Shown piece by piece: positions 4,270 through 26,700 of a DNA stretch of 64,000 nucleotides. Both the position numbers and the translations under genes were made by a program. Location of the stretch: the NCBI GenBank assembly GCA_950097015.1, contig CATNEN010000033.1, forward strand, positions 1,116,001 to 1,180,000, written 5' to 3'. The notes under the pieces were generated by a model. That model did no database searches. It was not told the DNA's origin and saw only the letters and a list, made by a program, of their open reading frames with translations. The first letter of the stretch is position 1. Every line of letters begins with the position of its first letter. The stretch is from Macrostomum hystrix. Taxonomy: Eukaryota > Animalia > Platyhelminthes.

Positions 4270-5777
4270 TCAAAGCAGACTGCAGGCTCGGCTCCTCTGG
4301 CTTGGCCCAGCCGGCGCGCTGAATGGACGCTTCTTAACACCGCCCAGCCCTTCGCTGGCGTCGCCGACGTGTCGACGAGTCGCAGCCGCGGCTACAGCAG
4401 CAGCAGCCGCCGCGGACGAAGCGGCTGAATTAGCCGGCTCCGGCGACTCGGCAGCTTCATCAATGCGGCCCAGTGTGACAGTCAGGCGGCGTTTCAGGGC
4501 CGCCGCAGTCTCAGCCGCCGCCTCGGCCGCCTCCTCAGCCGCGGATTCGGCAGCCACCGACGTGGCGGCGCCGCTGCCAACAACGGCGATGACCTGCGCC
4601 AGCAGCTCCTCCTCTTGATCATCGTCAACATGAACAGCTTCAGGGGCAGCGGCTGCCGCTGCGGTTTCGGCCAGCACGACAGTCCTTGGCTGGCTCTGGT
4701 GCTCCGGGCATAGCCAGAGAATCTTGCCAGACGGCAGGTGGCATCGGCGAAGTCCGCTGGCGATGCTCGGATCGCGACGGCGCAGATACTCGCGCAAGGC
4801 GGCGTGCAGCTGGCGAAGATCGACCTCGGGACCGGCCCGCTCCGCCCCCGAGCGCAGGTGGTCGAGGAGGCGACCGCCGGCCAGCGGGTCGGCCGCGGTA
4901 TCCAGGCCGCTGCGCCGGCTGTGTCGAATGACGAGCATCAGGCGAAGCAGCAGCGGCGCCAGGCCCGCCAGCAGCTGCAGTGCGGCGTCGCGGCCGAGTC
5001 TGATTGGCAGGCCGGCGCCGGGGGCCGCGTGCCAGCCGCCCTCATGCTCGCACAGCAGGCGGAAGCGGTACAGGAAGCTGCTGGGCCCTTCGTCTTCTGG
5101 AAGAGGAAGATCGACATCGGGGGCGTCTTCAGCGAACGGCATCGTGCCGTCATCCGGGGTGCCCGCTCTGCTGGTCTGAAAGTGGAATGTTAGATGGGGG
5201 GTAGAATGTTCGAAGGGTGGAATGAAAAATTCTAATAATTGCATGAGGGCTGCAGGCAATGGCATCCATCATTTGGTGGAGCTGCAGCCAGCAGGAGGCA
5301 ATTCTGTTCATTTCGCTGACTCCTGAGCACACAGATACTTTACGCAGGCACACGCTCACACAGGTGCGTACATCTGCCCTGACTTTCTCATCGTCAGGCA
5401 GTGTACACTTCACTGTGCCTTGGAGGTCGGCCCTCAAGGGCGTAAATTGCACGACAAGCCCAAAAGATTTCCCTGCGCGGCTGCGTCCCAAATGATTGTG
5501 GCCTCGCCTCGGAATCGAGCTCAGGGACCTTGGTGCGAGAGGCGAACGCTCTGCCACTCACCCCCTGGTAAAAGGGTAGAACGGCAGAACGGTGGAATCA
5601 CAGAAAGGTGGAATGGCAGAGGAGAAAGGAGCTTCAGTCAGACGAGCACCCACAACTGAGGTCACTCACCGAGTCCGCATAGATGTCGGGCACGATGAGG
5701 CAGGGAAACTGCTCGGCCGGGTCCAGAAAGCCCGCGTACTGCCTGTAGACCTTGCGCTGCGCCAGCTCGATCAGCTC
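4270..5777 (-). CDS. Roco exons 37-38: C-terminal module and Ala-rich tail, stop TGA at 4270-4272
   Basis: [11 protein letters not shown]...[39 protein letters not shown]; acceptor tttcag|ACC at 5175. Confidence 0.8.
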
Positions 5778-8700
5778 CTGCCAGTTGGACAGTTCTTATC
5801 ATCTTACTATGAGTAGGATATTTGCTAGGAATACTTATATCATTTAAATTGCGTGTGATACTGGAGATTGATTAGAATGACTTAAAAGAGATTGATTAAA
5901 ATCTCCATGAGATAGATCTGTGTGACCTTCAAAAGATTTATCAGTGTGATCTCCAAGAGATTGATCAGTGTGATCTCCAAGAGATTGATCAGTGGATCAT
6001 TACCTGGAACATGGCTCCCCCAGCACCCGCAATGCTGCTGCTGCGCCGCTTTCGCAGGCTGTCTTTGCTGTCGGCCCTCCGGCTGGGGTAGTACTTCTCC
6101 AGGCACTCTGTGACGCTGTTGAGCAGCGTCTCGAAGCAGGAGTCGGTGCCTGCTTGGAAGTTCACCTTCGGATGGCCGAGCGACATCATGCCGATCTGTG
6201 CGACGGAGGATTGGGGATTTAGAAATTATTGAATGGGAAAATTCGTGATTTTTATAAGAATTTCGGTATCAAGAGATCGACAATGGAAGATTGGAACAAT
6301 AGAGGATCGGAACAATGGAAGATTGGAACAATGGAAGATTGGAACAATGGAAGATTGGAACAATGGAAGATTGGAGCAGCGTATGATGAGATTATTGGGG
6401 AAGATTTGGGGAAGAGGGATGTAAAGAAAAGTTTAGATAAGAGATTATATGGAAAATAAGTTATTATGGTAAAATACAACCTTGAATTCATAAATAGGAA
6501 TCTTATAAATTGTAGCCTAATATTTTGCTGTCAAATGCAGTCCTGAAGCAAGTTCAATTTTTTAAACCAATTAACTACAAACTCATTTCGGAGCAGTTGA
6601 TTGTCTTTTTGGTGCAGGCCAACCAATCAAAAGAGTGCTAATGTAAATAAACGACAGTGCTTTCACAATCTCCATAAATTTGATTACATTTCTCCTAGTC
6701 TGATAAAGCATACATCTTTTGGCGGCCTGTGTGTTTTTATACCTTCAACTGCATTAAATCTGCAGCCACTTTAAGCCGGCTTCACGCCACGAATCATAGT
6801 CTCGAGTGTTTGTGTTGTCTGATCCTCTTTTTTCCCTTAGTCTCCCAGCACAAATAAATGATTAGCCGCACGGCCCCCCAGGGCGAAAAAGAGGCTGTCT
6901 GTCAGTCAGGCTGTCTGTTTCGCACGGTTTGTGCGGCTGTAGTGATAGTACGAGCTGCATGGAATCATGCTGTTCTCAATGTGCATTTCAAATCAGGGAC
7001 TGCCCAAATATTGGAGAGTCCAAATATGAATTTACTATATCGATGATATAGTCAGGCTTATTCTCATTTTTTATCATACTGATGTTTATGCTACTCATAC
7101 TTTTGTTTGTTACTGCCTAATAGCAGTAATTCTATTCCTTACAATTCTATTTTTAATTTTTACTCGTTTGTCTAGCTGTACTTTTACGTTTGATTTGTAT
7201 TTTTCTGTGGCAATTTTAAGGGTGTACTTTTACCTCGAAATTTTATGCACTTTAATAATTCATTTGTACTTTTCTGTTGCTGTGTCGTGTACTTTTATGA
7301 ATTGTGAACCTTTTTGTGTAAAAAATTATCAATGAAGTGAACTTTTTCTCTATTCATTCAATAATCCCAAACAAGGTCATAACATTTGATATTTTTTACA
7401 TGCAGGCAACAAGCATGGTGACATTTTTTGAGTCGCAGGGTGTGGCTGGTGGGTGAAGTTTCACAGAATTAGCTCGTTGCAGAAAACCGACTTCAACTTA
7501 AGCCAGACTAACTGCAGACTGAAATCGAAACCAATCTGAGAAGTGTATATAGCTAGCTGCCTAGCCATGCCGCAACCTCGGCTTGGGAGCTGGAAACGGG
7601 CTCACTTTCGTTCCCAGTCTTGTATCGGCCGTACAGGATCGATTTCCCTTTCTCCCAAAAGGATCTATTTTCCCCTAAAACTGCAGCGCTGTATTTAAGC
7701 CGGCTACTACTCGCGCAGCTAAATGAATCCTTGAAATTCTTGAGCACTCGCCGCGCGGGGCCACCGGCTGTGGCTACTGGCTACTGAAATCCGCTTCCCA
7801 GCTTTAGTAGCACACCTGCGTGGGAGTGTGAGTAGAGGATTTAAGCCGTAGATATCGACGTATCACAAAATGCCTCCCCAGTTTCGCTTTTAACTTCCTT
7901 TCGTAGAATCTCGGCTGATCGCTTCTGCTACAGTGGCTCGAATTGAAATCAGACTGAGGTCCCTCACACATTAGAGCTGTTCGAATGTTTCAACTGTCCG
8001 CCAGTTATTCAGTTTTAGACATGTACTTTTGTTTGTTTAATAAAAATTTTTATTCAATGCGGCTCCTTATTTGGTAATATTTGGTCGCGGCTCAGCCACC
8101 GAGTTCGCTGATTGGCTGACGCTCTCTGCAGGCGAAGCCCAACCCCATCAAGCCGACTCTGATTGGCTGGGGGCCCGTCACAAATTAACGCAGCTTTTCT
8201 ATCGCTGGGTTTCTGGGTTTCTAGCACACTTCACTCCACAGATTTATTAGATCCAAAAATGATAAATCCATAGATTCCTTATCTGCCCAACTGTAAATAT
8301 AATGTGCCAAAAATTACCTTAACTATTCTCTCATTGGCTGAAACGAAAAATCGATTCTACCTACTGCAACTAATACTATTCATGCTTGCTAAGTTGCTCA
8401 TTTAGTTGCTCAGCATCATTCGATCTTTGAATGTCTAGATTGGCTTGGTTACCTCCGTGGACTCCCACAGCACTCCGGTGCCGACCACGCAAATGATCAT
8501 CGGCCTGTTGAGCGTCAGGTGAGCGAACCTGAACTCCATCTGACAGTTCTTGGAGGCCACGTACTGCAGTGAGATTGCGATGGGGTGTAGTTAGCTAGCT
8601 TAATGATAACAATAATAATAATATAACAATAATAATTTCTGGAGGGCTGCGTTCAACGGCACATTGCTGGTGACAGTATAACAGAAATTTCGATGACTCC

Positions 8701-11700
8701 TGAGCACGCACGCACACAGATACCGTACTCAGGCACACACTCATACAGGTGTGTACATCTGCCCTGACTTTCTCATCGTCAGGCAGTGTACACTTTCACT
8801 CTGCCTTGGGGGTTGGCCCTCAAGGGCGTAAATTGCACGACAAGCCCCCAAGCCTTGTCTCGGCGGCTGCACTTCAAATAAATGTGGTCTCGCCACGGAA
8901 TCGGGCTCAGCAACCTTGGTGCGAGAGGCAAACGCGTTAACCGCTCTGCTACTGACCCCCTAGTTAACTAACTTGCGTGGGAGCATTCTTTTTTCTGTCC
9001 ATTTTGCCCATTAACGTGGCGCTCCCACGATTTAGTCGCGTCACACTCACGGTCCGGTGCGGACTATGGCGCTAATGGAGGCTAAGTCAGTGCTATAAAT
9101 TTTCATCCACACAATGGCTAGGTGACTTTGATTTGCAAACGCAATTCTTAGAATCCCATTAGCCAAATATAGAAACATGAATGCACTTTAGTTCCGAGGA
9201 AGTCTGGAACCTGTTGCCAGTCACTCAGATGGCTTTCGCCGAAACAGAAACACATTTTTCCTGAGACCTACACCTAAGACAACTACGAGTATTAAGATAA
9301 ATTTCAAATCAATTCGATCTAAAACCTAAGACCAGCGAAATAATGGTAGAGTCAGTCTCACCTCATCAGATAGGCAAGCCACGACAACCTTGCAGGCCTT
9401 GAGTCCCTGGCAGAGGTCTTCGAACAAGCCTTTCTCTCCTAGCCGTTCCACGTCGATCCAGCAGGACAGTCCGCCCACCTCTTCCAGGTGTTTTTTAATC
9501 TTGCGCGGATCGCCGAAGCCCAAGGAGCGAGAGGTGGCCTTGCCGTGTCCGGCCTTCACAGCCTCGTGCGAGTTCGCCCAGCAGTAGCTGATGAACACGT
9601 CAGCGCGGCTGCTCACTCGCTGTGTGGTGTGGTGGCATGATTGTCAGGTTCAGTTAGCATTCACTTTCAAAGGCATACTTGATGGTAAAGACAGCACTGG
9701 AAGTTAGTCGGCTAAGTTTGATGTGCTTTGGTGTGTTGGGCATTTGATTTGAACTAAATCGCTGTGTCAGAATCTGTATTCCTATAATAATTTAGCTCTT
9801 GTTTTATAGAACACGTGTCACCTATTCATTATCAAAGCCTCTCAAAGAAAGCCAGCGGAACTGAAGTGCGAATCTCAGCAGCGTGTGTCGCAGAGCAGAA
9901 GATATTGATAAGAAACTCGACCCAGTCTCACTTTGATCTGCCACCAACAGCTTTGCTTGGGGACGGAAATCAAGGAAATCAAGGCTTCTGTTGATAGGAA
10001 CAGAAAATGTCTCAGAAAGAGTAAGGTTTCACATTATCGGCAAGCAAATTGGCCTTCTTAATTCGATAATAAGTTTAGGGAATATGAGTGCGGACACGTC
10101 GATTTTTTTTAAATACAATCTAATTTTAACTAAAATTCACATTTGAGCGTATTAGCTGCTGTCATACTACTCAGCAAGCGTACATTCAAGCAAAGGATTC
10201 ACCTTAACAAAATTAATCCCACTTCCAAATGAAGAGAGCAACGCGCCCATCCATATAAGTTTTCTCTCTTTCTCTTCTTAGTCCACTCATATTTTTTGTG
10301 CGAGATATCCATACGCCAGCCCAGCTGCAATCTGATTGGCTGGCGGGTTAGATCAGAGGGGCGAGAACCGGATCGGAGCGTGAGACGAAGTAGAAAAATT
10401 TCCGAGTTTAGGAAGAGAATACGCCAGGGACAGGGAGGCGGTGGGGCGAACTCGACAAAAGCGCCGCAGTTGTCAGAGAACACTATAATCTGCTCAAGCA
10501 TCACAATCTGCAGCAACAGGAGCTATGCTAGCCCACGTGGCTGTCAACGGCAGCTGTCTGAATGACTCCAACAGCTCGGCGGGTCCCGCCGGCGGCGCCG
10601 CCAATGTCTATCTGTACATTGCGTGCGTCCTGAGCTATCTGAATGCCCTAACCAACGGCTTCTCTCTTGTGGTGTTCGTCCTGGACAAGAAAAATGTCAT
10701 CATGGGCCGTCTGCTCCTGCTTCTATCGCTCTCTGAGACTGTGCTGAACATCGGCTTCGCAGCCAACCTCACCGTCATGCTCTCCGTCATGGCAGACGCG
10801 GGCAGGCAGACCTACGACAGCACGCTAAGACCTCAAATCCTCACCTGCACCTTCTTCCTCTCGTTCGTCGTCGCCAACGCCTTCATTATGGTGCGCAATT
10901 GGTGCCTCGTGATGATCGCCGGCAGCCGTTGCGAGGTGGTCAGCAACCCCTTCAGCACCCGCAGTGGCCAGCTGTTCAGTCACCGCCGCAGTCAGGTGTG
11001 CTACGCGGTGACTCTCATCCTATCACTGTTGGTGTGCGCCCCGCGCTTGTTTGAGTTCACCTGGACAATCTGCGAGTTCCCGCCGGCTGCTGGCGAGGAC
11101 AATTCAACTGGCACCGTTTACAGCCTGACCACCGCCACGCATCACATCCTGGACAAGAACCCGTCCTACAGCCACTACAAGACTCTGCTGGTGTTTCCGC
11201 TGCAGACGATTGCTCCAATTTTTCTCATTAGCGGCCTGTCGCTGGTGATCATCTTCATCTTGCGCAGGCGGCGTCTTCTCCAGCAGAACAGCGGCGGCGG
11301 AGCCGGTGGTGGCGGCGGCGGCGGTAACGTCAATAGCGGCGCCGGAGGCGGAGTCAGTGCTGGCGGCGGCAGCGGCAGCCGCAGCCAGGATGCAGCCACA
11401 AAGACCGTCATGATCCTGATGTTCTCGTTCATCATCTGCGAGCTGCCCACTTTTCTGTTCTTCATCCTGAACCAGACAATCTTCGCCTCCATGCGCGGCT
11501 TCACGGAGATCCGGATGCACACCACCTTCCTGGCCAACATCATGCTCAGCGCGGACAGCTTCACTAACTTCATCATCTACAGCAGCACCAGCAACACCTT
11601 CAGGGAGACGGTGCGTCGCATGTTCCACCTGCCCGATAGCCGGAGAGGCCGCAGCAACAACTACAATTATTACAACAACCACCTGCACAACAACAACTAC

Positions 11701-14700
11701 ACCATGCTCAGCAGGGACGCCAACGCCATGCGGCGCGCCGAGGCGGCCGCTGCCGCTGCAGCCGCAGCCGCCGCCGCCGCCGCAGCCACCGCTGTAAACA
11801 GCGATGACCCAGCGTTGGTGCCCCTGAACTGGCAACACCTGAGCTCAGAATGAGCACGAATTTCTGGTGTCTGCAAATCAAAACTGTTGCTTTTCTCTGA
11901 AAACCTTTAATTGATGATTTTTGTGACGAGATTGAGAAGGGCTGAACTGAGTTTCCTATTTAATATATAATTTAAGCTTTTTTAATTTTGCGCGAGTCGC
12001 TTTACGCTCCAAATCCACGCCACTCCGTGTTCGATGGCGTGGCGCTGAACAACAAGCACTATAAATAGCACCTGCTCGTCCATAATGCTATTACTCTTGC
12101 GCTTAGAAACAGTTTCTATGCAACATTAGCAATCATGGGATGCCTATCATTTGCTTGCGTGTCCCTTCTCTCTCTGTCTCTGAGCCATCTGCGTCACTGT
12201 GAATCGTCCGTCTGTATAATCGCAATGTTTATTGGTCCAGTTTGTTGTCTGTCTAAAGGCTGAAATTAGAGATTGCCCAACCGTGTACATTGACTGTGTC
12301 AGGAATACATTTCTAATAAAATAATCCCAAACGTTAACTAGCTTGTTAGTCGACCGTGAAAACTTTTCAATTTTTGCAAACTTTTATGCTTTATTTTTAA
12401 ACAAACTTCAGACAGGAAGACTCTCATAAAATTCAAGAAGTCCAGCATTGCACAATGTCCGTTGCAGTGAAGAATGCTGAGCTCAGTGTAGTGCTTTGCG
12501 CGTTCTGTTCAGAGTGCTCAGATGACTGCTCAGGGGAGTGCTCAGAAGACTGCTCAGAGGAGTACTCAGAAGACTGCTCAGAGGAGTACTCAGAAGACTG
12601 CTCGGGGGAGTATTAGGAATACTGCTCAAGGGTCGATGAAATGGGCCGAACAGAGCATTCATGCCGTATGTCCGACGTAGCTGTGAGACAGTGTCACCTT
12701 AGGCCCCGGGCACTTCTGCAGCCCCTGCTAGCAGCTAACCAATTTGAGCAGTTTTCCTTTTTCAATACGCACACCATGTCACTCGTAAACAAGAAGGAAA
12801 TAAAAGGAAGAAAAATTAGGAAATTAGCCGCCACACATTTCTTGAGCAATTCCTGCTGAGCGGCCGGTCGAAATCTAGGCGAATTTCGTTGCGGCATCAG
12901 GCCGGAGGATAAGCATGAAATAAATTGCGGCAAAGTCGCATCTCGTCTAGCTAAGCCGAGAGGGCGGGCAGCTAAGCCGCAGACGATGATGGAGCGGGCG
13001 CTGCCCGCCCCAGATGGGAGATTTCTGAGGATTTGGGATTTTGTAGACTGAGTGGCCAACAAAAAGCGTTCAAAGCCTCGTGGGGACTCGTCTGTGTGTC
13101 AGTGTCCGCCATGCGCTAAAAGTACCGAACAGGCTAATGCGTCTCGGGCCAAGGCTAGCGGAGCTGGTGAGAATGATTTCCAGGCTCGATTCGGGCCCTG
13201 ACAAGTGACATTTGTTGTGATTTGAAAACTGCAAAATCATCAAGTGTCACATTTTTGCCATTCCGCTGAACCCTGAGAACGCACACCGGCCATGCGGGTT
13301 GGCAGGACCACCTTCTCTCCATGGCTGCACAGCACATTAAATGGGCATGAGAATCGGACTCTAGCTCTCAGGTGCGCGTCAAGGGTAGACAGCTCGAGCA
13401 ACTATCCCAGTATTTTACATTGCGTAATGCCTCGTCATCTAATTAGTGCTTCTAACAAGTCGAAAACTCACCTCGCGCTTGACAGCGCCGCTCTTCTCCC
13501 TCACAGCCGAGACCACCTCAGCCAGCTTGTCGTCGAACTGCGCCTCCCGTTGGAAGTTGATGTACACCAGGCCGGAGAGGCGAGCGCCCAGGGCCGTCTG
13601 CTGCCACTCCTTGCCGTTGCCGACAAGTCCAAGGACGAACGGCTTGTTCAGGTGCTCCGTAGCCAGCGACAGGTGCTGCGAGCACGGCTCCGAGAGGACG
13701 AACTCGTTCGATATGAGGCACAGGCAGCAGCCGGACTGCTGCAGCAGCGACATGCTCTCGGACAGACTGCGGTCCTCCGCGCCCACTTCGTCGGAGAGTC
13801 GCTGGCTGAAAGAGTCGGCGGAGAAGTGCTGCAGCTAAATCGACGTGGATAAAACTAAAGGGAATTCTGATTTCCAGGAGTCGTTAGATTTCGCAACCAA
13901 ATTAAACCACGAGTAGAGATTGTGCCACCTGCGCTTGCCTCATGCTGGGCAGCTGGCACTGCAAAGTTGCTGGTTAGACCCAGCCCAGCCAGACCCAGCT
14001 GAGAGGGCTTAAGTAGAGGAAAATGCATTTCTGCCCTGCTCAGCGAAACAGTTATGGATGAGCCTCGACTAGAAAACACGGCTCTTATAGTGCAAGGTCA
14101 GCAACACAGGAAAATTGGTGCTTCACTCAACCTACTGATCTCAGCCTGAGGATCTGAGCAGCCTGAGGATCTGAGCAGCTCTTAAAATCCATAGTCACAA
14201 GCATTAGAAGAGTGAATTCAACAAAAGTGTACGACAGCCCATACATATCATGTCATGTACTGTTAACATGTTCAACTGTTCAACTGACGTTTTGACAACC
14301 AGGTAAGAGCGGGCAATCGAAGTCAAGTAGCAGGAAAATGAAAAAAATTAAATGCATCTTAAGTCGCTCATGGGTTTTGGGCTATCCAAAGCATCGCGTA
14401 GCAACTAGCCGGTCTAGAGCCTCTAAAAAGCCCCGCTTAATTAGAGCAAGGAGACTACGGCGGGAAACTGTAAGAAGCTGAAAGAGAAGGAAAGCGAGAC
14501 AGAGACAGACCGACTGAGTGAAGGGCGCGGGCTGATTACCGCTGATTCCCAGCTGATTCCCAGCATCCGGCTGCGGAACTAGAGCCCCGACCTCCCCACC
14601 ATCATTATCATTAGCGACTCACACTGACAGACCCGCTGACTCCAGGCTCGCCTGTATCCTGTCAATGATGCCGCCGCCAGTCCGGTTGGCCGAGCAGAAG

Positions 14701-17700
14701 ATCAGGGTGACGTCGTGTACAAGGTCAAGCCTGGCCGCTGACAGGTCGTTCACTGATCGCTCAAAGTGCAGCTCGAAGTCCGCTGGCGACTCTGGCGGCA
14801 TCACGGCTGTCGGTTGGGGCGGGGAGAAATGAGAATCGAGATTTCCCGTAGCTTGATGAGGCTGCAATGTCTTTTCTGGCTCCTTCATTAGGCCTTTGGG
14901 CATCGGGTTTGGCCGGCTTGCCCCCTTGAGCTCGGCCCTGTCATTTGACAGTCGAGTCTTAACTCCCACCCAATGCCCCGGGTGAGCTGAGCTGGGCTCA
15001 AAGTGGCGGCTGCATAATTTTAGGATGTATATTCGCATGCATACCTGTATATACCTGGTAAACAATGCTGGTGTTACTGAAATTCTAAATTCTGAATTGA
15101 GAAGCACGCATTTGAGACAGATAATAATTAAAAACAAATTCCAGTTTTGTAACTAAATCGCATGTACAGATAATGAGCATAGAGTGTGCTGGAATTCTAT
15201 CTATATGCGAGCTAAAGTTGAGAGCTGCAATTAAACTTTTGAAAATTCCAAGGATGAGCAGTGATCGACCAGTGAGGATAGATTGAGCTAATAGATGTGC
15301 TAATAGTTGAGCTGAAGGTTGAGCGCTGGTTGAACTAATGGTTGAGCGCTGGTTGAACTAATGGTTGAGCGCTGGTTGAACTAATGGTTGAGCGCTGGTT
15401 GAACTAAAGGTTGAGCGCTGGTTGAACTAAAGGTTGAGCGCTGGTTGAACTAATGGTTGAGCGCTGGTTGAACTAATGGTTGAGCGCTGGCTGAACTAAA
15501 GGTTGAGCGCTGGTTGAACTAATGGTTGAGCGCTGGTTGAACTAATGGTTGAGCGCTGGTTGAACTAATGGTTGAGCTGAATATTGAGCGGTGGTTGAGT
15601 TGAGGCTTGAGCGCTGGTTGAGCTAGAATCTGCTTGCTTAAGAGAGTTAAGATTTCAAGAACAACTAATCGTTGTGCCAAGCCTTGTGCTTACAATAACT
15701 TAGTCGCTGGGGCGAACAACGCCCACGAGTTTGCTGTGGACTTTAGCGAACTGTTGCCTGTAACAGTTGGCTAAATGCTCATTAATATAATCATGTTCTG
15801 ATTCCGTGAGACCGTCGAGGTCAGTTTTTCTCTTGGCACAGTATTAGCAGTTGGCCTAGCAAGGCGACTGCACTAGCGAATTGAAGGAGTGACGCGGCGG
15901 AAGGGTGAAGAGAAAGCAAACTCACCTTGCAGTGTTGGGATGGGAACGCAATGGAACATGGAATGGCACTGCAGGAACAGGGCCCGCATCTCGATGGCTC
16001 TGCGCAGCACCTGGCTGCTGAACATGGCCGGCTCCTGGATTTTCTGCGGAATTGCCGTGAGAAAATCTTAATCGTTACCTAAGGTAGATTATGCTTGTTT
16101 CTTTATTTTGAAATCTGAAATTGAATTTCGATTTGTCACTCGCCTGCCTGACGCAGTCGATGCATGGCACCTCGTAGACATAGGATACTCCGCCAAACGC
16201 TTCGGCGATTAGACCTTCGAACACTTCGTGGATCAGCATCAGCATGTTCTCCGGAGACGAACCCTGGACCTTAACTATGACCGTGCGCTCCCTTAAATAG
16301 AAGATGAGTACGATATAAAAGTACGAAATGGTAGGATATTAAAGTACAAAATAGTAGGATAATAAAGTACACAATGGTAGGATATTAAAGTAAAAAATGG
16401 TAGGATATTAAAGTACGAAATGGTAGGATATTAAAGTACAAAATAGTAGGATAATAAAGTACACAATGGTAGGATATTAAAGTAAAAAATGGTAGGATAT
16501 TAAAGTACAAAATGGTAGGATATTAAAGTACAAAATGGTAGGATATTAAAGTACAAAATGGTAGGATATTAAAGTACAAAAAGGTAGGATATTAAAGTAC
16601 AAAATGGTAGGATATTAAAGTACAAAATTGGGATGACATAAAAGAACGTGGGCAGGAAATTAAAGTACAAAATATAAAACTACAATAGGGGTACGATATT
16701 AAAGTGCAAATTGATAAGACACTAAAGTACAAGATGGGCAGGACAGCGGAGGACTGGGTGGGAATGACACTAAAGGAAAAAGGGTGGAACATTGAAGTAA
16801 AACGTGGGTAGGTCATTGAAGTAGAATGCGGGTAGGAGACTGGATGACAAGGTAGAGCACTCAGGCGAGCACAAGTGGGTGGGTTGCTCACCCCTTCTTA
16901 ACCATGAGAGCCCGATGATCTCCCTTGGACAGCAGTGAGCCACGCTGCCAGATGACCAGGTCGTCAGAGAACTGGCACAGGCGCACCTGGGCCCTATTGA
17001 ACAGGCCGGCGGGCAGGTAATCGAACACGTACTTCATCTTGGCCTCCTGTACCTCGCCCAGAGCGCTGACATCTTCCCATTCGAACTGCGGCTTCTTCTG
17101 CGGCAGGAGGCAGGGCACAACGCTGACGCCGGAGTCAGTCAGCGGGAAGGTCAGGTCGAAGGTCTCGGTGAGGGTCAGGAGCCACTCGTGCAGCTGTGCC
17201 GGGTAGTCCTTCCAGATGCTGTGAATGTCTTCGTGCTTGAACCTGCCCTCCTGCGGGGAGATGTCAATCATTTTGCTTTGTTGAAGGTCCAGGTGGAAAA
17301 CCAGTTAAATGTCCAGGTGGAAAACTAGTTAAAGGTCCAGGTGGAAAACCAGTTAAATGTCCAGGTGGACAATCAGTTAAAGTTCCAGGTGGACAATCAC
17401 TTAAAGGTCCAGGTGGAAAACCAGTTAAATGTCCAGGTGGACAACCAGTTAAACGTCCAGGTGGACAACCAGTTAAAGATCCAGGTGGAAAACCAGTTAA
17501 ATGTCCAGGTGGACAACCAGTTAAAGGTCCAGGTGGAAAACCAGTTAAATGTCCAGGTGGACAACCAGTTAATGGTCCAGGTGGAAAACCAGTTAAATGT
17601 CCAGGTGGACAACCAGTTTTTCATATCAAAACCTGGCAATCAAATTAATGATCTATGTCCTTCTATGGCGTTCTTCTCTGTCTCTGCTTGTTCATACCAA

Positions 17701-20700: not shown

Positions 20701-23700
20701 GGAAGGAGTGAGGGAAGGAGTGAGGGAAGGAGTGAGGGAAGGAGGAGTGAGGGAAGGGAGGAGTGAGGGAAGGAGGAGTGAGGGAAGGAGGAGTGAGGGA
20801 AGGAGGAGTGAGGGAAGGAGGAGTAAGGGAAGGAGGAGTGAGGGAAGGAGGAGTGAGGGAAGGAGGAGTAAGGGAAGGAGGAGTGAGGGAAGGAGGGAGG
20901 GAAGGAGGAGTGAGGGACGGAGGGAGTGAGGGAAGGAGTGAGGGAAGGAGGAGTGAGGGACGGAGTGACGGAAGGAGGAGTGAGGGACGGAGGGAGTGAG
21001 GGAAGGAGGGAGAGGGAAGAAGTGAGGGAAGGAGGAGTGAGGGAAGGAGTGAGGGAAGGAGTGAGGGAAGGAGTGAGGGAAGGAGTGAGGAAAGGAGGAG
21101 TAAGGGAAGGGAGGAGTGAGGGAAGGAGGAGTGAGGGAAGGAGGAGTGAGGGAAGGAGTGAGGGAAGGAGGAGTGAGGGAAGGAGGAGTGAGGGAGGAGT
21201 AGTGAGGGAAGGAGGTGTGAGGGAAGGAGGAGTGAGGGAAAGTGTGTGTAAAATCAGCTATGTGCTGACAGATGAGGACTAAATTTATGATTTTGTCTGT
21301 GGAAGGACATTAGGGGCCTGGCTCCAGGTGTTAATGTGATTCTAGATGGCAGAGCCAGCGAGTCAGCGGAGTCCCTGGAGCAGCTTTTATCGGCCTGTCT
21401 GCATATCTTAGACTGGGCTAGCAGAACCAGCAATTCATATTCGCACAAAAATTGGTTCAAAGTCCAGTAAAAGTGGTTCCCGAGATAGTCCACCAACTGG
21501 TCTCCGGGGGGTTGGGAGAAAAATATGAGATGGGGATGTTTGCGAATGGGAACAATAATTGCGCCATTTCGGTCTTTTTTTATCGTTGGCAAGCTGAGAG
21601 CAACACGTCTCAGAGCTGTGCTGGCGGATATTTTATTCATAAGCGGTCAATCGAACTGCTCTAATGGTCCGGTGGGGCAACGAGTTTCATAGTCGCAGCG
21701 GGAAAGTAAACAAGCATGCCCCCCATGCTCTCTCGCACGGTGTCTGCGAAGTAACCGGATATCAAGGCGAGATGGACGACTGCGAGCTCCGGCCGACTTG
21801 ACAATCATAGTTTTCAGGAATTGGAACGGGAGCAGCTGCCGCTTGGAGACCAAAGGGCAACTTGAAAACCTGAGAGCGACTCGCCATTTTTAGCACGGGA
21901 TTAGGACGCCCAGAAAATTGAATATTAATTTAATGAAGCGTCGAAAGGTCAGACGAAAAATGGGCAGCTTAAAACTAGAAGACAGTCTTCAGCGAGACGG
22001 AATTCGTTAGAGTTTTTGGAGATAATTGGACAGCCATCATCGACAGACTGTCCACAACGAGGACCATCCTGACTGTAAGCAGCGTCATTTTTATAACTAT
22101 TATATCCCCTCTACCTCCTCAGAAAGGAGGATTTCGACTAGTAATCACTAGATCATTCTTAGCAGTTAGGTGACAAGCAGGTAAACAATAAGAATTTCTA
22201 TTATGACTATTAATTTGCAGGAGGGTTTTGGGCAAGGGTACATCATTTGGCGATGACTGTAGACCCGCTAGACAATTCTGACTCCTAAGCACACAGGCGC
22301 ACTGTACGCAGGCACACGCTCCACAGGTGTGTACACCTGCTTTGACTTTCTCATCGTCAGGCAGTGTACACTCTCACTGTGCCTTGGAGGTTGGAGGTTG
22401 TAAATTGCACGACAAGCCCCTAAGCCTTCTCTCCGCGGCTGCGCCCCAATAAATGTGGCCAAAAATTGCGTGTCATTGTTCTGCACTTCAGTCAGATTCA
22501 AGAGACCAGAAAGATCCTATTGAAAAAAATTAATAATTAATCCCAGATTCGACCCCGGAACTGTCAGGCAGCGAGTTTCCGCCCGCTCGGTGACAAACTG
22601 CTTTCATTGTGCGGCCTTCCGTTGGGGTTGGGGAAGCCCCAGCGGCGGAGAGGCGCCGGCGATGTTCTAAAAATAGAAACAGACCCGGCTTGCGTGACTC
22701 CGCAACAATTCTGCCGCTAAAATGTCGACAGTCACCTGCCGCCTTCGCCATTCTCAATCATTTTTTGTTCTGCCTCGCTTTGCTTTGCTAAGCCAATTTT
22801 TTCCATAAATGTTTTTTAGACCGTGGCCATATTTTTCATTTCCAGTTCAACAGACTGGCCGTCTGCTAGTGCTTTACGATTCTAAAACCGTGTGTGCTTG
22901 AAAATGCCTGGGACCTGTTTTGACCCCTTCCTACGCTTGTTCCTCAGTCCGTCCGTCTGTTATTCTGTCTGTCTGTGCTGGGTGTCTGTCTGTGCTGGGT
23001 GTCTGTCTGTGCTGGGTGTCTGTCTGTGCTGGGTGTCTGTCTGTGCTGGGTGTCTGTCTGTGCTGGGTGTCTGTCTGTGCTGGGTGTCTGTCTGTGCTGG
23101 GTGTCTGTCTATCTGTCTGTGCTGGGTGTCTGTCTGTGCTGGGTGCCTGTCTGTCTGTGCTGGGTGTCTGTCTGTGCTGGGTGTCTGTCTGTCTGTCTGT
23201 GCTGGGTGTCTGTCCGTTTGTCTGTGCTGGGTGTCTGTCCGTTTGTCTGTGCTGGGTGTCTGTCCGTTTGTCTGTGCTGGGTGTCTGTCCGTTTGTCTGT
23301 GCTGGGTGTCTGTCCGTTTGTCTGTGCTGGGTGTCTGTCCGTTTGTCTGTGCTGGGTGTCTGTCTGTCTGTCTTTCTGTCTCTCCTATCCCAGCAGCAGC
23401 AAAACTGTCTATCCTAAATCCCTAACCTTGCTTTCGCTGCAAGAAACAGTCGCCGCTTTTCGATTTTTTCAATAGTGCATGCTGACTCGCTGCACTGCGG
23501 GTCGTGTTACCTACTGAGTGTGGGAAGGAGCCCCAAGGCCTCACAAATATTCTCCCAACTCCATATAAGAGCTCAAATAAGAGCTCAAATGACGCGACCT
23601 GTTCCCATAGCTGAGAAGTGAATCAAATTTGATGAAAACAATAAAGCTAATGGGAACTGGGGCGGAGTGTGACGCACTGGAGTCTCAATTTATTTCATCA

Positions 23701-26700
23701 TCATCAGCAGCAGCAACAGCAGCAGCAGCAGCAGCAGCATCCTTTGCCGGAATTAGTTTCTGAAGCAACACTAAAAATCCTGATCCTTTTAGTCAGATGA
23801 GACGGAAATCTCGGGCCCAAGACTGTTTAATTCCCCATCTCTTCCTGCCCTATGCTTCGCTGAGGAGATAATGCCGAGTCTAATAATCCGGGAGAGGAGC
23901 GGAAGCTGGGGTTAATCCGCCCCATTAGCCCTATTGGCTGCTTAGCAGCAACTCGGAGAATATCCGTGCTAGACAGAAATGCATCGAATGGCTCGGGTGC
24001 CACTGAAGCAAGCAATCAATCACTGACCTTTCCTGCTTAATACAATGAGCATAACTTGGCATAGCTGGAGCCAAGGGGCTGCTGCGAAAGTCTTCAATCA
24101 AATCGCGTCAGGAAATTTTGGGAATGAGGCATTTCGAATTCCAGTCAGCTTTTGATAGCAATGGTCTGTTGTTGCTTGCAGACTTTGATTTCTATTTTTT
24201 ATTTTTCCGAATTTGATTTATACCTCAGGACTTCAACCCCGCTTACCCTGATGACAACCCGCTTACCCCGATGACACTCAGCTTACCCTGATGACAACCC
24301 GCTTACCCTGATGACACCCCGCTTACCCTGATGACACCCCGCTTACCCTGATGACACCCCGCTTACCCTGATGACACCCCGCTTACCCTGATGACACCCC
24401 GCTTACCCTGATGACACCCCGCTTACCCTGATGACACCCCGCTTACCCTGATGACAACCCGCTTACCCTGATGACACCCCGCCGCTTACCCTGATGACAC
24501 CCCGCTTACCCTGATGACACCCCGCTTACCCTGATGACACCCCGCTTACCCTGATGACAATCCGCTTACCCTGATGACACCCCGCTTACCCTGATGACAA
24601 CCCGCTTACCCTGATGACAACCCGCTTACCCAGATGACACTCCAAGCACCAGTGTTTGATTCTCACCTCACCAGAAGCTGAGCTGACCGTAAAAAATCCC
24701 ACAATGCTGGGATATTTATCCCGCAGCTCCTGAACCGGCATGTCAAACTTGGCCACCTTGTCGCAATGAGTGCCAACCACAAAGATGGGAACTCCTGGCG
24801 CGTGGCAGGAGATGCTGTTCATCCAGAAGTCAAGTCCGGCGTGTTCAAAGCCCAGGCGCATGTTCCACACCAACAGGTACACAGCTCGCGAGGTCAGAAA
24901 GAACTGGTGCGTGTTGTAGTACAGGGTCTGGCCAGCGAAATCCCACACGCTGAAGGTGACGGACTGTCCAGATCTGTTGATGGTCCAGGTGCTGATATCG
25001 ATGCCGTCTGTGATGGCCTCCATGCGCAGCTGGGGCGCTTTGAAGTCTGGCGACATCAGGGCGCGCATGAGGCTGTGGCGAACGGAGTGGCGAAGGTGCT
25101 AGCAATTCCACAGGTGATTCTGCATTCAAAGCTAACACCATCGAGACAGACTTACCTGGTCTTGCCGGCGCCGCCCAAGCCGACGAACATGAGCTTAGTG
25201 CGGTAGCAGGCGACGCTGCCGCTAGCCAGGCGGCGCAGGTAGGCGATTGTGGCCAGCATGCCCTGTGCCAGAATCTCCTGCGGCGGAGTCTTCAAATTCT
25301 CGCAGCCCTGCATTGACAGCACTGCGGATTGAGGGTAGGGCTGCAATGCACATTCTACATCAACTCGATGCACATTCTACATCAACTCGATGCACATTCT
25401 ACATCAATTCGATGCACATTCTACATCAACTCGATGCACATTCTACATCAACTCGATGCACATTCTACATCAACTCGATGCACATTCTACATCAACTCGA
25501 TGCACATTCTACATCAATTCGATGCACATTCTACATCAACTCGATGCACATTCTACATCAACTCGATGCACATTCTACATCAACTCGATGCACATTCTAC
25601 ATCAACTCGATGCACATTCTACATCAACTCGATGCACATTCTACATCAACTCGATGCACATTCTACATCAACTCGATGCACATTCTACATCAACTCGATG
25701 CACATTCTACATCAACTCGATGCACATTCTACATCAACTCGATGCACATTCTACATCAACTCGATGTATGTATGTATGTATGTCAACTCTCGAGTGTCTT
25801 GTATGCATAAAGTTTGCTAGGTTGAGGATAGACCCAGTTGTGCCTGATCATGCGTACCGAGGCCAGACATATTATTTTCCTGAACGCCCGCCCCCCTCCC
25901 TCCAGAAAATGTGTTTATGCGTCAATTTTCAAGGGTAATAACAAAATTAATAACAGGTGAGCACTGCTTTAGCCTGATTAGGGATGGAAATGATTAAAAG
26001 GATGTACCAGCCAGGACTATTTTCTTCCCGATGACCTTTGGCTTAGTAATAGTTTCATTTAGCATTGCAAGGTAATCTGGCACGCGAGCGGGATGCACGC
26101 CATTTCGTGTTCTTTCGTAGCAATGTCTTTAAGCAGCCATTTTTGCCGCAGAAATCGATTAGTCTAATCTGGCCTGTCTCATGGCCAGCCGCAATTTCAT
26201 AACTAAAAATAACCCAAAAATACGGTGGAGTCTAAAAAAGTACAATTAGGAGTATTCGATAAGTTAGAAAGGACACACGAGATTTGGAAACCAGGAAACC
26301 TGGAAACCAGGAAACCTGGAAACCTGGAAACCTGGAAACCTGGAAACCTGGAAACCTGGAAACCTGGAAACCAGGAAACCTGGAAACCAGGAAACCTGGA
26401 AACCTGGAAACAAGAAAACTCAGAAACCTGGTCAGTTTTCGAGAGCCCTAACCACTGTGCTAAAATCGTTGTAGAAACGTTTCTTTACTGCGAAAACTTA
26501 ATGGAAAAGCATGAAAACCTGTTATTGACTCACCTGTGAGCTGCGGAAAGTTGCCCTGTACACTTTCCAGGTAAATATTGTGATCCAGGATGAGTGTGCG
26601 CAGCTGCTTGAGCGCCGAAATCTCAGGCGGTACTCGTCGAATGGCCTGGTTGCTGAGCACCAGGGTCTCAAGGCTGCGGCAGCCGAGGAGCTCCGAGGGG

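Follow-up and report, generated by a model that had tools for sequence, protein, structure and literature searches.

Does a single animal polypeptide carry one live and one dead TIR domain behind a GTPase, and is the live one an enzyme that acts on nicotinamide adenine dinucleotide (NAD+)? This question is raised by a stretch of 64,000 nucleotides from the flatworm Macrostomum hystrix (GenBank assembly GCA_950097015.1, contig CATNEN010000033.1, positions 1,116,001 to 1,180,000 of the forward strand), hereafter the window, whose own coordinates are used throughout. A first-pass annotation made from these letters alone had noticed twin TIR domains at 8453-14806, with a His in TIR1 and a Glu in TIR2 at equivalent positions, and had read them as part of a SARM1-like, GTPase-gated NAD+-consuming pathway in a flatworm. 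Both residue strings were indeed found on the minus strand, in one spliced open frame; of the two limits, 8453 coincides with an actual exon end and 14806 falls inside TIR1 exon 1. Within this minus-strand gene, 8453-14806 codes for the larger part of the C-terminal output module of a giant Roco GTPase that has no kinase. Our comparisons show an ancient and conserved split between a fast-evolving, degenerate but well-folded TIR1 and a strongly conserved, hallmark-complete TIR2.

Window exons were searched individually, and the spliced frame was used for reading and for alignment with relatives. Pfam TIR_2 matched the piece that holds TIR2 exon 1 (9329-9643; 28.9 bits, E 1.7e-6, cut-off 28) and the piece that holds TIR1 exon 2 (13442-13834; 24.3 bits, E 4.7e-5), the latter under the cut-off for the exon alone. 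Aligned with each other, TIR1 and TIR2 of the window scored 111, against 29 ± 5 for 500 shuffles (z = 16), and the alignment ran without gaps from the SNEF/SDEY motif through helix alphaC, where C-S-Q-H of TIR1 faces C-Q-M-E of TIR2. TIR1 and TIR2 are genuine, paralogous TIR domains derived from an ancient internal duplication. The facing His and Glu stand where TIR NADases have their catalytic Glu, on helix alphaC. TIR1 is also without the BB-loop Asp, the BB-loop Gly and the betaA Ser, and because these are lost too, the word "dead" is fair for this domain. Searched against the PDB with phmmer, the TIR1 exon gave zero matches; the best PDB match of TIR2 exon 1 was the TIR domain of SARM1, a weak one (E 1.2).

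The exons of the gene and its neighbouring domains are, from upstream to downstream:

25319-25158 and 25080-24667, minus strand: Roc GTPase exons (Pfam Roc E 1.5e-16; THCD motif; 57-70% identity to relatives)
19774-19664, 19150-19004, 17253-16903, 16317-16138 and 16067-15924, minus strand: COR-A and COR-B exons (Pfam; tblastn high-scoring segment pairs, HSPs, collinear with four relatives)
14623..14924, minus strand: TIR1 exon 1, betaA to alphaA, upstream limit approximate (tblastn HSPs 14924-14685 and 14927-14622 with the relatives P0015 and P0021)
13472..13805, minus strand: TIR1 exon 2, alphaB to alphaE, with the His codon CAC at 13675-13673 (RNA contigs, frame, Pfam TIR_2)
9620..13471, minus strand: TIR1-TIR2 intron of 3852 bases (joint 9619|13472 in both runs, GT..AG), with an opposite-strand gene inside
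9362..9619, minus strand: TIR2 exon 1, betaA to betaC with the family insert and the BB loop, BB-loop Asp codon at 9454-9452 (RNA contigs, Pfam)
8453..8563, minus strand: TIR2 exon 2, helix alphaC, with the Glu codon GAG at 8536-8534 (RNA contigs, joint 8563|9362)
6004..6195, minus strand: predicted TIR2 exon 3, ...AMFQ, betaE and alphaE (acceptor cacag|ATC and donor GTAATG, both phase 0)
4672..5103, minus strand, in the open reading frame (ORF) 4273-5268: tail domain, LCEHEGGWH... (tblastn HSPs 5103-4672, E 2.7e-14; part of the same protein in relatives)

Three of these exons (13805-13472, 9619-9362 and 8563-8453) are joined by transcript-like contigs, and their combined frame is open, reading (V)QRLSDEV...AVKRE, then ...ACLSDE, then ...LWESTE. 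The TIR2 catalytic-Glu motif crosses a splice junction, SDE closing exon 9619-9362 and the remainder opening exon 8563-8453. The contigs come from two runs of one study (X1 and X2), and their placement covered window positions 8401-14400. One contig in each run (5851 and 5902 nt) carries both joints, 8563|9362 and 9619|13472, with zero mismatches, and the skipped segments are bounded by GT..AG on the minus strand. The library type of X1 and X2 is unrecorded; we treated them as RNA because exons are covered, introns are skipped at GT..AG and most intron bins are empty. Both contigs run on for approximately 4.2 kb upstream and at least 925 nt downstream of the three matched exons, which fits a single Roc-COR-TIR-TIR transcript. 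The two TIR domains thus share one transcript by the contigs and lie downstream of Roc-COR by exon order. The junction between TIR1 exons 1 and 2 is predicted: a donor GTGAGT starts at 14622, joining it to 13805 keeps the frame open, and the acceptor at 13805 is an exon end in the RNA contigs. The predicted TIR2 exon 3 has consensus splice sites and an open frame, and matches relatives in the multiple alignment.

Upstream, stop-free window pieces matched Pfam Roc (24589-25098, E 1.5e-16), COR-A with COR-B (16891-17304) and COR-B (16078-16338), with E values of 1.2e-9 for COR-A and 1.1e-8 for COR-B. Roc is therefore followed by COR-A and then COR-B on window exons, in an order collinear with relatives, as in Roco proteins. 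The G motifs of this Roc-COR supradomain are intact (second Roc piece, 24589-25376). A further piece, taken for a first Roc upstream (45229-45735, minus strand), gave zero Pfam matches at E ≤ 0.1.

We then asked whether the TIR2 Glu stands at the catalytic position. Against the PDB, the TIR2 family profile matched Cat1, a CRISPR-associated NADase (E 2.7e-8), and a plant TIR ADP-ribosyl cyclase (E 6.5e-4), with further matches to TLR1, RPP1 and ROQ1 and a weak one to SARM1 (E 0.23). The alignments supported this placement: ...SenCkmEf... of the profile lies over SDWCWDEL of Cat1, SSWCLDEL of the plant TIR and SEWCHYEL of TLR1, Glu on Glu. The TIR1 family profile also matched Cat1 (E 3.2e-4), as well as TLR5 and RPS4, and its consensus Leu sits on the Cat1 Glu. 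For a structural view, AlphaFold was run with a 32-row alignment on residues 2594-2931 of P0015, the amphioxus relative, which hold its TIR tandem; this model stands in for the window protein. The model had a mean predicted local distance difference test score (pLDDT) of 88.5, and both halves showed an E-H-E-H-E-H-E-H-E-H order of the TIR beta-alpha type. The invariant TIR2 Glu (model residue 260) falls within helix 255-267, predicted to be alphaC. Both halves matched solved TIR structures in VIA-align comparisons with the PDB (Z 15-17). The TIR1 half was closest to RPV1 (Z 15.7), RUN1 (15.6) and SARM1 (15.3; root-mean-square deviation 2.7 over 127 residues), and the TIR2 half to Hydra TRR-2 (16.8), MyD88 (16.1) and the SPARTA TIR (15.6); these Z values are nearly tied and do not separate enzymes from adaptors. 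Taken together, profiles and model place the TIR2 Glu at the catalytic position on helix alphaC. TIR2 has the Glu on alphaC and the BB-loop Asp and Gly of TIR NAD+-processing enzymes, and TIR1 lacks the Glu. One published account describes this Glu, together with the BB-loop Asp and Gly, as crucial to NADase activity in every case (PMC13732033).

The asymmetry is conserved. When the TIR-TIR regions of 39 Roco-type relatives were aligned with MAFFT, the catalytic Glu was present in every TIR2 (39/39) and in three TIR1 domains (3/39); both paralogues in the same genome are alike in this respect. The other 36 relatives have Leu, Ile, Met, Val, Phe, Ala or Ser in the TIR1 catalytic column, mostly Leu, Ile or Met. 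We considered the window His as a substitute catalytic base and rejected it, since relatives have Leu, Ile, Met or Ala at the same site. A table of four sites in 32 relatives gave the same picture. The catalytic Glu and the BB-loop Asp were each found in 32/32 TIR2 domains, versus 3/32 and 2/32 TIR1 domains, respectively, and the betaA Ser in 32/32 versus 8/32. At the two BB-loop Gly positions, TIR2 has Gly in 22/32 and 21/32 relatives; TIR1 has a gap in 30/32 at the first position, and no Gly is listed for it at the second. The tandem alignment has 16 invariant columns, every one of them in TIR2, and the mean column identity was 39% for TIR2 versus 24% for TIR1.

In a maximum-likelihood tree, every TIR1 was parted from every TIR2 by one branch (Shimodaira-Hasegawa-like approximate likelihood ratio test, SH-aLRT, 99), indicating that the duplication is older than the divergence of these proteins, that of Thecamonas included. 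The end branches of the window domains measured 2.29 substitutions per site for TIR1 and 0.50 for TIR2. The three relatives with Glu also in TIR1 are Thecamonas trahens XP_013756137 (P0075), P0077 from a eukprot transcriptome and P0119 from ENA. Because this apusomonad, P0077 and P0119 keep Glu in both TIRs, Glu in both was probably the ancestral state, and TIR1 would have become dead on the stem of the animals or in their early history. Beside these hallmarks, TIR2 has an insert of approximately 25 residues between betaA and alphaA (window 9520-9600, minus strand; CW.NS..AV..G......G.GDPR), in which the Asn, Ser, Ala, Asp, Pro and Arg are invariant; it is family-specific and foreign to canonical TIRs.

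How widespread is this architecture? A word search with the 111-aa TIR1 exon came back empty, as its length filter, which leaves out the long relatives, would predict. With the 86-aa product of TIR2 exon 1 as query, a full HMMER search returned 336 proteins at E ≤ 1e-3; identity was 50-60% for the top ones, and many had lengths of 2000-3300 aa. When all window exons were compared with these proteins by local BLAST, LRR, Roc, COR-A, COR-B, TIR1, TIR2 and the tail were found in this order in single polypeptides, and reverse tblastn showed the window exons to be collinear with proteins of Branchiostoma, Haliotis, Tubulanus, Dimorphilus and others. The relatives include amphioxus (Branchiostoma lanceolatum A0A8J9W0R3, annotated "MFHAS1"), molluscs (Haliotis, Pecten, Ylistrum, Sinanodonta, Bulinus, Physella, Pinctada), the brachiopod Lingula, the nemertean Tubulanus, the annelid Dimorphilus, the rotifer Rotaria and the flatworms Macrostomum lignano and Cichlidogyrus, a monogenean. 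Among unicellular organisms, Thecamonas trahens has a Roc-COR-TIR-TIR protein and Salpingoeca infusionum a shorter twin-TIR protein. Pfam found LRR, Roc, COR-A, COR-B and TIR_2 in all three full-length relatives searched; accessory N-terminal domains differ by relative, with MBT in amphioxus, PLAT in Haliotis and SPRY in Tubulanus. On these alignments, the asymmetry is a family trait across seven named animal phyla, so that its presentation as a flatworm feature was too narrow.

Members of this family have been catalogued before. The M. lignano protein A0A1I8J1V0 was listed with MT (dynein-like, 395-519), COR, LRR, P-loop, COR, TIR_1 and TIR_2 domains, with Tyr 2225 at the catalytic position of TIR_1 (2148-2284) and Glu 2388 in TIR_2 (2299-2404) (Hurieva et al. 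2026, Table S2, bioRxiv 10.64898/2026.04.20.719644). It thus has the same asymmetry as the window gene, with Tyr/Glu instead of His/Glu. A study of the Aplysia immunome filed ROC-COR+TIR proteins, one of them with MBT repeats, under putative TLRs and adaptors, and its authors proposed a "novel GTPase TLR signaling cascade" (PMC9334734); the protein with MBT repeats is like the amphioxus relative. The window gene shares its domain order and collinear exons with the Roco-TIR-TIR proteins (A0A1I8J1V0, A0A1I8IUY9, A0A8J9W0R3, A0A7I8VYT1 and those of Aplysia) and differs from them in its dead-site residue, His being found in the window gene only, among 40 sequences compared. The same genome holds a paralogue 74% identical to M. 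lignano A0A1I8IUY9. In the paralogues on C9 and C25, TIR1 reads C-L-N-S or C-R-G-M and TIR2 reads NCMMEF or NCMMEY. The window gene is therefore a typical member of a widespread, catalogued but unstudied invertebrate Roco-TIR-TIR family, and no flatworm novelty.

What would such a protein do? We put forward, as a proposition that could fall either way, that TIR2 has the executive role and most likely processes NAD+ as an enzyme, though one that is silent on its own, that TIR1 is its non-catalytic partner and that Roc-COR times the pairing of TIRs. TIR1 would be built in much as the dead sensor is paired with the live executor in RRS1/RPS4, and would complete or restrain an asymmetric TIR-TIR contact that opens the TIR2 active site; we infer that it acts on TIR2 in one of these two senses, activating or restraining. 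The nucleotide-dependent monomer/dimer cycle of Roc-COR would set when TIR pairs meet. As to the single claim that TIR2 processes NAD+, our reading of the sequences is evenly poised: the estimate is raised because exactly the catalytic hallmarks are selectively retained, and lowered because of two negative assays and an Asn in the place of a Trp. Indeed, hallmarks kept in TIR2 and lost in TIR1 argue for selection on catalysis.

Several observations weigh against this proposal. Isolated TIR2-type domains from Rotaria sp. A0A818LFL5 (row 136) and Dimorphilus A0A7I8VYT1 (row 137), the latter being relative P0021 of our comparison, were expressed in E. coli, and their "Active" field is blank, with neither cyclic ADP-ribose (cADPR) isomers nor NAD+ depletion, active rows being marked "yes" (Hurieva et al. 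2026, Table S4). The same preprint shows a cADPR-positive Roc-COR protein (Fig. 3A) that we could not trace in its tables; the two identified family members are negative. The reading of TIR2 as an NADase was hence too strong, with the two blank rows themselves being weak evidence because only 12/61 Glu-bearing animal TIRs scored as active in that screen, whose limits, according to its authors, include isolated domains, missing oligomerisation and unmeasured products (Hurieva et al. 2026). Whether animal TIRs other than SARM1 are enzymes is described there as an open question. Where SARM1, AbTir and plant TIRs have the Trp of the WxxxE motif, TIR2 has an Asn, four residues ahead of the Glu, as it does in 24/32 relatives. 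This Trp is common, not universal, among active TIRs. The structural neighbours of the TIR2 half are headed by receptor and adaptor TIRs (TRR-2, MyD88), with enzymes approximately 1-2 Z units behind. Control by Roc-COR, finally, is pure inference, drawn by analogy with the bacterial Roco cycle.

The most serious competing explanation, which we regard as a real possibility though not a probable one, is that both TIRs are interaction modules without enzymatic function: the protein would be an adaptor or receptor, switched by GTP, and would bring in other TIR proteins much as TLRs and MyD88 do, the Glu, Asp and Ser of TIR2 serving binding or folding. It agrees with the two blank assay rows, with the proteins that the TIR2 half matches best in structure (TRR-2, MyD88, IL-1RAcPb and MAL), with the placement of the Aplysia proteins among putative TLRs and adaptors (PMC9334734) and with at least 33 other TIR_2 matches in the genome, which are possible partners. 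A precedent also exists, as the TIRs of TLR2, IL-1R9 and IL-1R10 carry the Glu yet are inactive in vitro (Hurieva et al. 2026, Discussion). However, from the apusomonad to chordates TIR2 never varies in the Glu, the BB-loop Asp or the betaA Ser, and the sister TIR1 lost exactly those residues and kept its fold, a pattern that suits selection on catalysis better than selection for a generic interface. The negative assay carries little weight, given 12/61 scored, isolated domains and several known products unmeasured. A second explanation keeps the enzyme and discards the partner: TIR2 would be autonomous, TIR1 a functionless decaying relic, and neither TIR1 nor Roc-COR would exert control. The absence of nearly invariant columns in TIR1 and its long branches fit decay. 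Yet TIR1 is present in 32/32 tabulated Roco relatives, its fold is predicted confidently (pLDDT blocks 91-97) and its core is conserved (betaC Ser 28/32, Cys 25/32, Trp 27/32); the inactivity of two isolated TIR2-type domains likewise speaks against autonomy, and we find this explanation improbable.

The pairing itself might also be an artefact, with the TIRs belonging to separate genes or the locus being a pseudogene. The 3.85-kb intron with another gene between the TIRs and the TIR1 exon under the Pfam cut-off on its own are what one would expect of it. Against these stand single contigs in two runs that span TIR1 exon 2 and TIR2 exons 1-2 in an open frame with 4.2 kb more upstream, and an exon order equal to that of single polypeptides in many species. 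Two genes or a pseudogene were rejected on the spanning contigs and the open frame, and we give an artefact a negligible chance. Returning to the proposal of a live executor with a dead partner, a stricter version of it seems to us rather unlikely: the fused TIR1-TIR2 would be an obligate asymmetric enzyme unit, in which a surface of TIR1 opens the TIR2 site and GTP-dependent dimerisation of Roc-COR joins two units. If true, it would account for the silence of isolated TIR2 domains in the published screen and would be the first GTPase-gated, heterotypic TIR NAD+-processing enzyme in animals.

These results matter beyond this locus. The family offers a natural contrast in one chain, one TIR having stayed hallmark-complete for hundreds of millions of years and its twin having become degenerate. 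The asymmetry is a concrete reason to re-test Roco-TIR-TIR proteins as a tandem, or with the GTPase, rather than as isolated domains. Roco proteins are of interest through LRRK2, and one with a TIR pair as its output in place of a kinase would be a simple system for the control of effectors by Roc-COR. The gene is testable in vivo because Macrostomum is amenable to RNA interference.

The tail that follows TIR2 is Cys/His-rich, with the signature LCEHEGGWH ... WLCPEH. It is present in about 30 relatives; in its alignment, Cys, Glu, Trp, His and Trp were invariant and Leu, Cys and His nearly so, and these conserved residues may form a metal site. The tail had no Pfam match and no usable ESM Atlas match. 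An AlphaFold model of the contiguous tail exon reached a pLDDT of 79.8 and had no match among PDB folds (best Z 4.9).

The gene inside the TIR1-TIR2 intron is separate from the TIR gene and nested on the opposite strand:

10525..11853, plus strand: intact ORF of 442 aa for a rhodopsin-type G protein-coupled receptor (GPCR) (Pfam 7tm_1 E 9.1e-12, Srw E 5.4e-11)

Short unspliced contigs over this ORF (10441-11081 and 11300-11691) suggest that it is expressed at a low level. Downstream of it, still in the intron, both runs have a contig piece of approximately 250-300 bases at 12060-12356, which could be either a small transcript of its own or the GPCR 3' untranslated region. A short interspersed repeat (8600-8950), with similar copies near 5153-5600 and 22120-22520, lies in the intron that separates TIR2 exon 1 from exon 2. 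Its summed contig depth was in the thousands in both runs, with many variant letters and rearranged joints, and its translations turn up again at other places in the window; it probably resembles a short interspersed nuclear element, abundant and transcribed. As for TIR_2 elsewhere in the genome, where at least 33 matches were counted, the strongest TIR matches are in a tandem cluster on C38 of the same assembly (G000, 17.955-17.996 Mb, L001-L010), made of five near-identical loci with paired TIR_2 matches. Each locus has a TIR_2 match of approximately 86 bits in a frame of 338-348 aa, then one of approximately 70 bits in a 101-aa frame.

Compared with known systems, the window protein shares with SARM1 the TIR fold, and the FISY start and BB loop (IDVE+L..G.FED) of TIR2 resemble FISY and IDVEKLEAGKFED of SARM1. 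The TIR2 Glu is at the position of E642, as placed through profile alignments to other TIRs; the E642Q substitution abolishes SARM1 activity (Hurieva et al. 2026, Table S4). The sequence resemblance is local. SARM1 is ARM-SAM-SAM-TIR, whereas the protein described here is LRR-Roc-COR-TIR-TIR-tail with one live and one dead TIR; TIR2 has Asn-Cys-x-x-Glu instead of Trp-x-x-x-Glu, and the similarity is weak (E 0.23-1.2). Pfam found neither ARM nor SAM on ten window pieces or three full-length relatives. A SARM1 orthologue was rejected, LRR, Roc, COR-A and COR-B standing upstream in place of the ARM/SAM architecture. The claim of a flatworm SARM1-like pathway is thus not warranted.

A likeness in arrangement is seen in plant paired TIR-NLRs, in which the sensor TIR is without the Glu and the BB-loop Asp and the executor TIR keeps both, the dead sensor being proposed to prevent auto-activation of the live executor (PMC13732033). 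At the sequence level, the same pairing of a dead TIR, without Glu and BB-loop Asp, with a live one is found here as in RRS1/RPS4. The plant pair consists of two polypeptides with STAND ATPases, whereas the window protein is a tandem fusion behind a Roc-COR GTPase, and the functional analogy is hypothetical. With LRRK2, MFHAS1 and the C. tepidum Roco protein, it shares LRR and a Roc-COR supradomain with intact G motifs. A bacterial Roco protein alternates between monomer and dimer during GTP turnover (PMC5714945). The window protein has no kinase, and it differs in carrying two TIRs and a tail at the output position.

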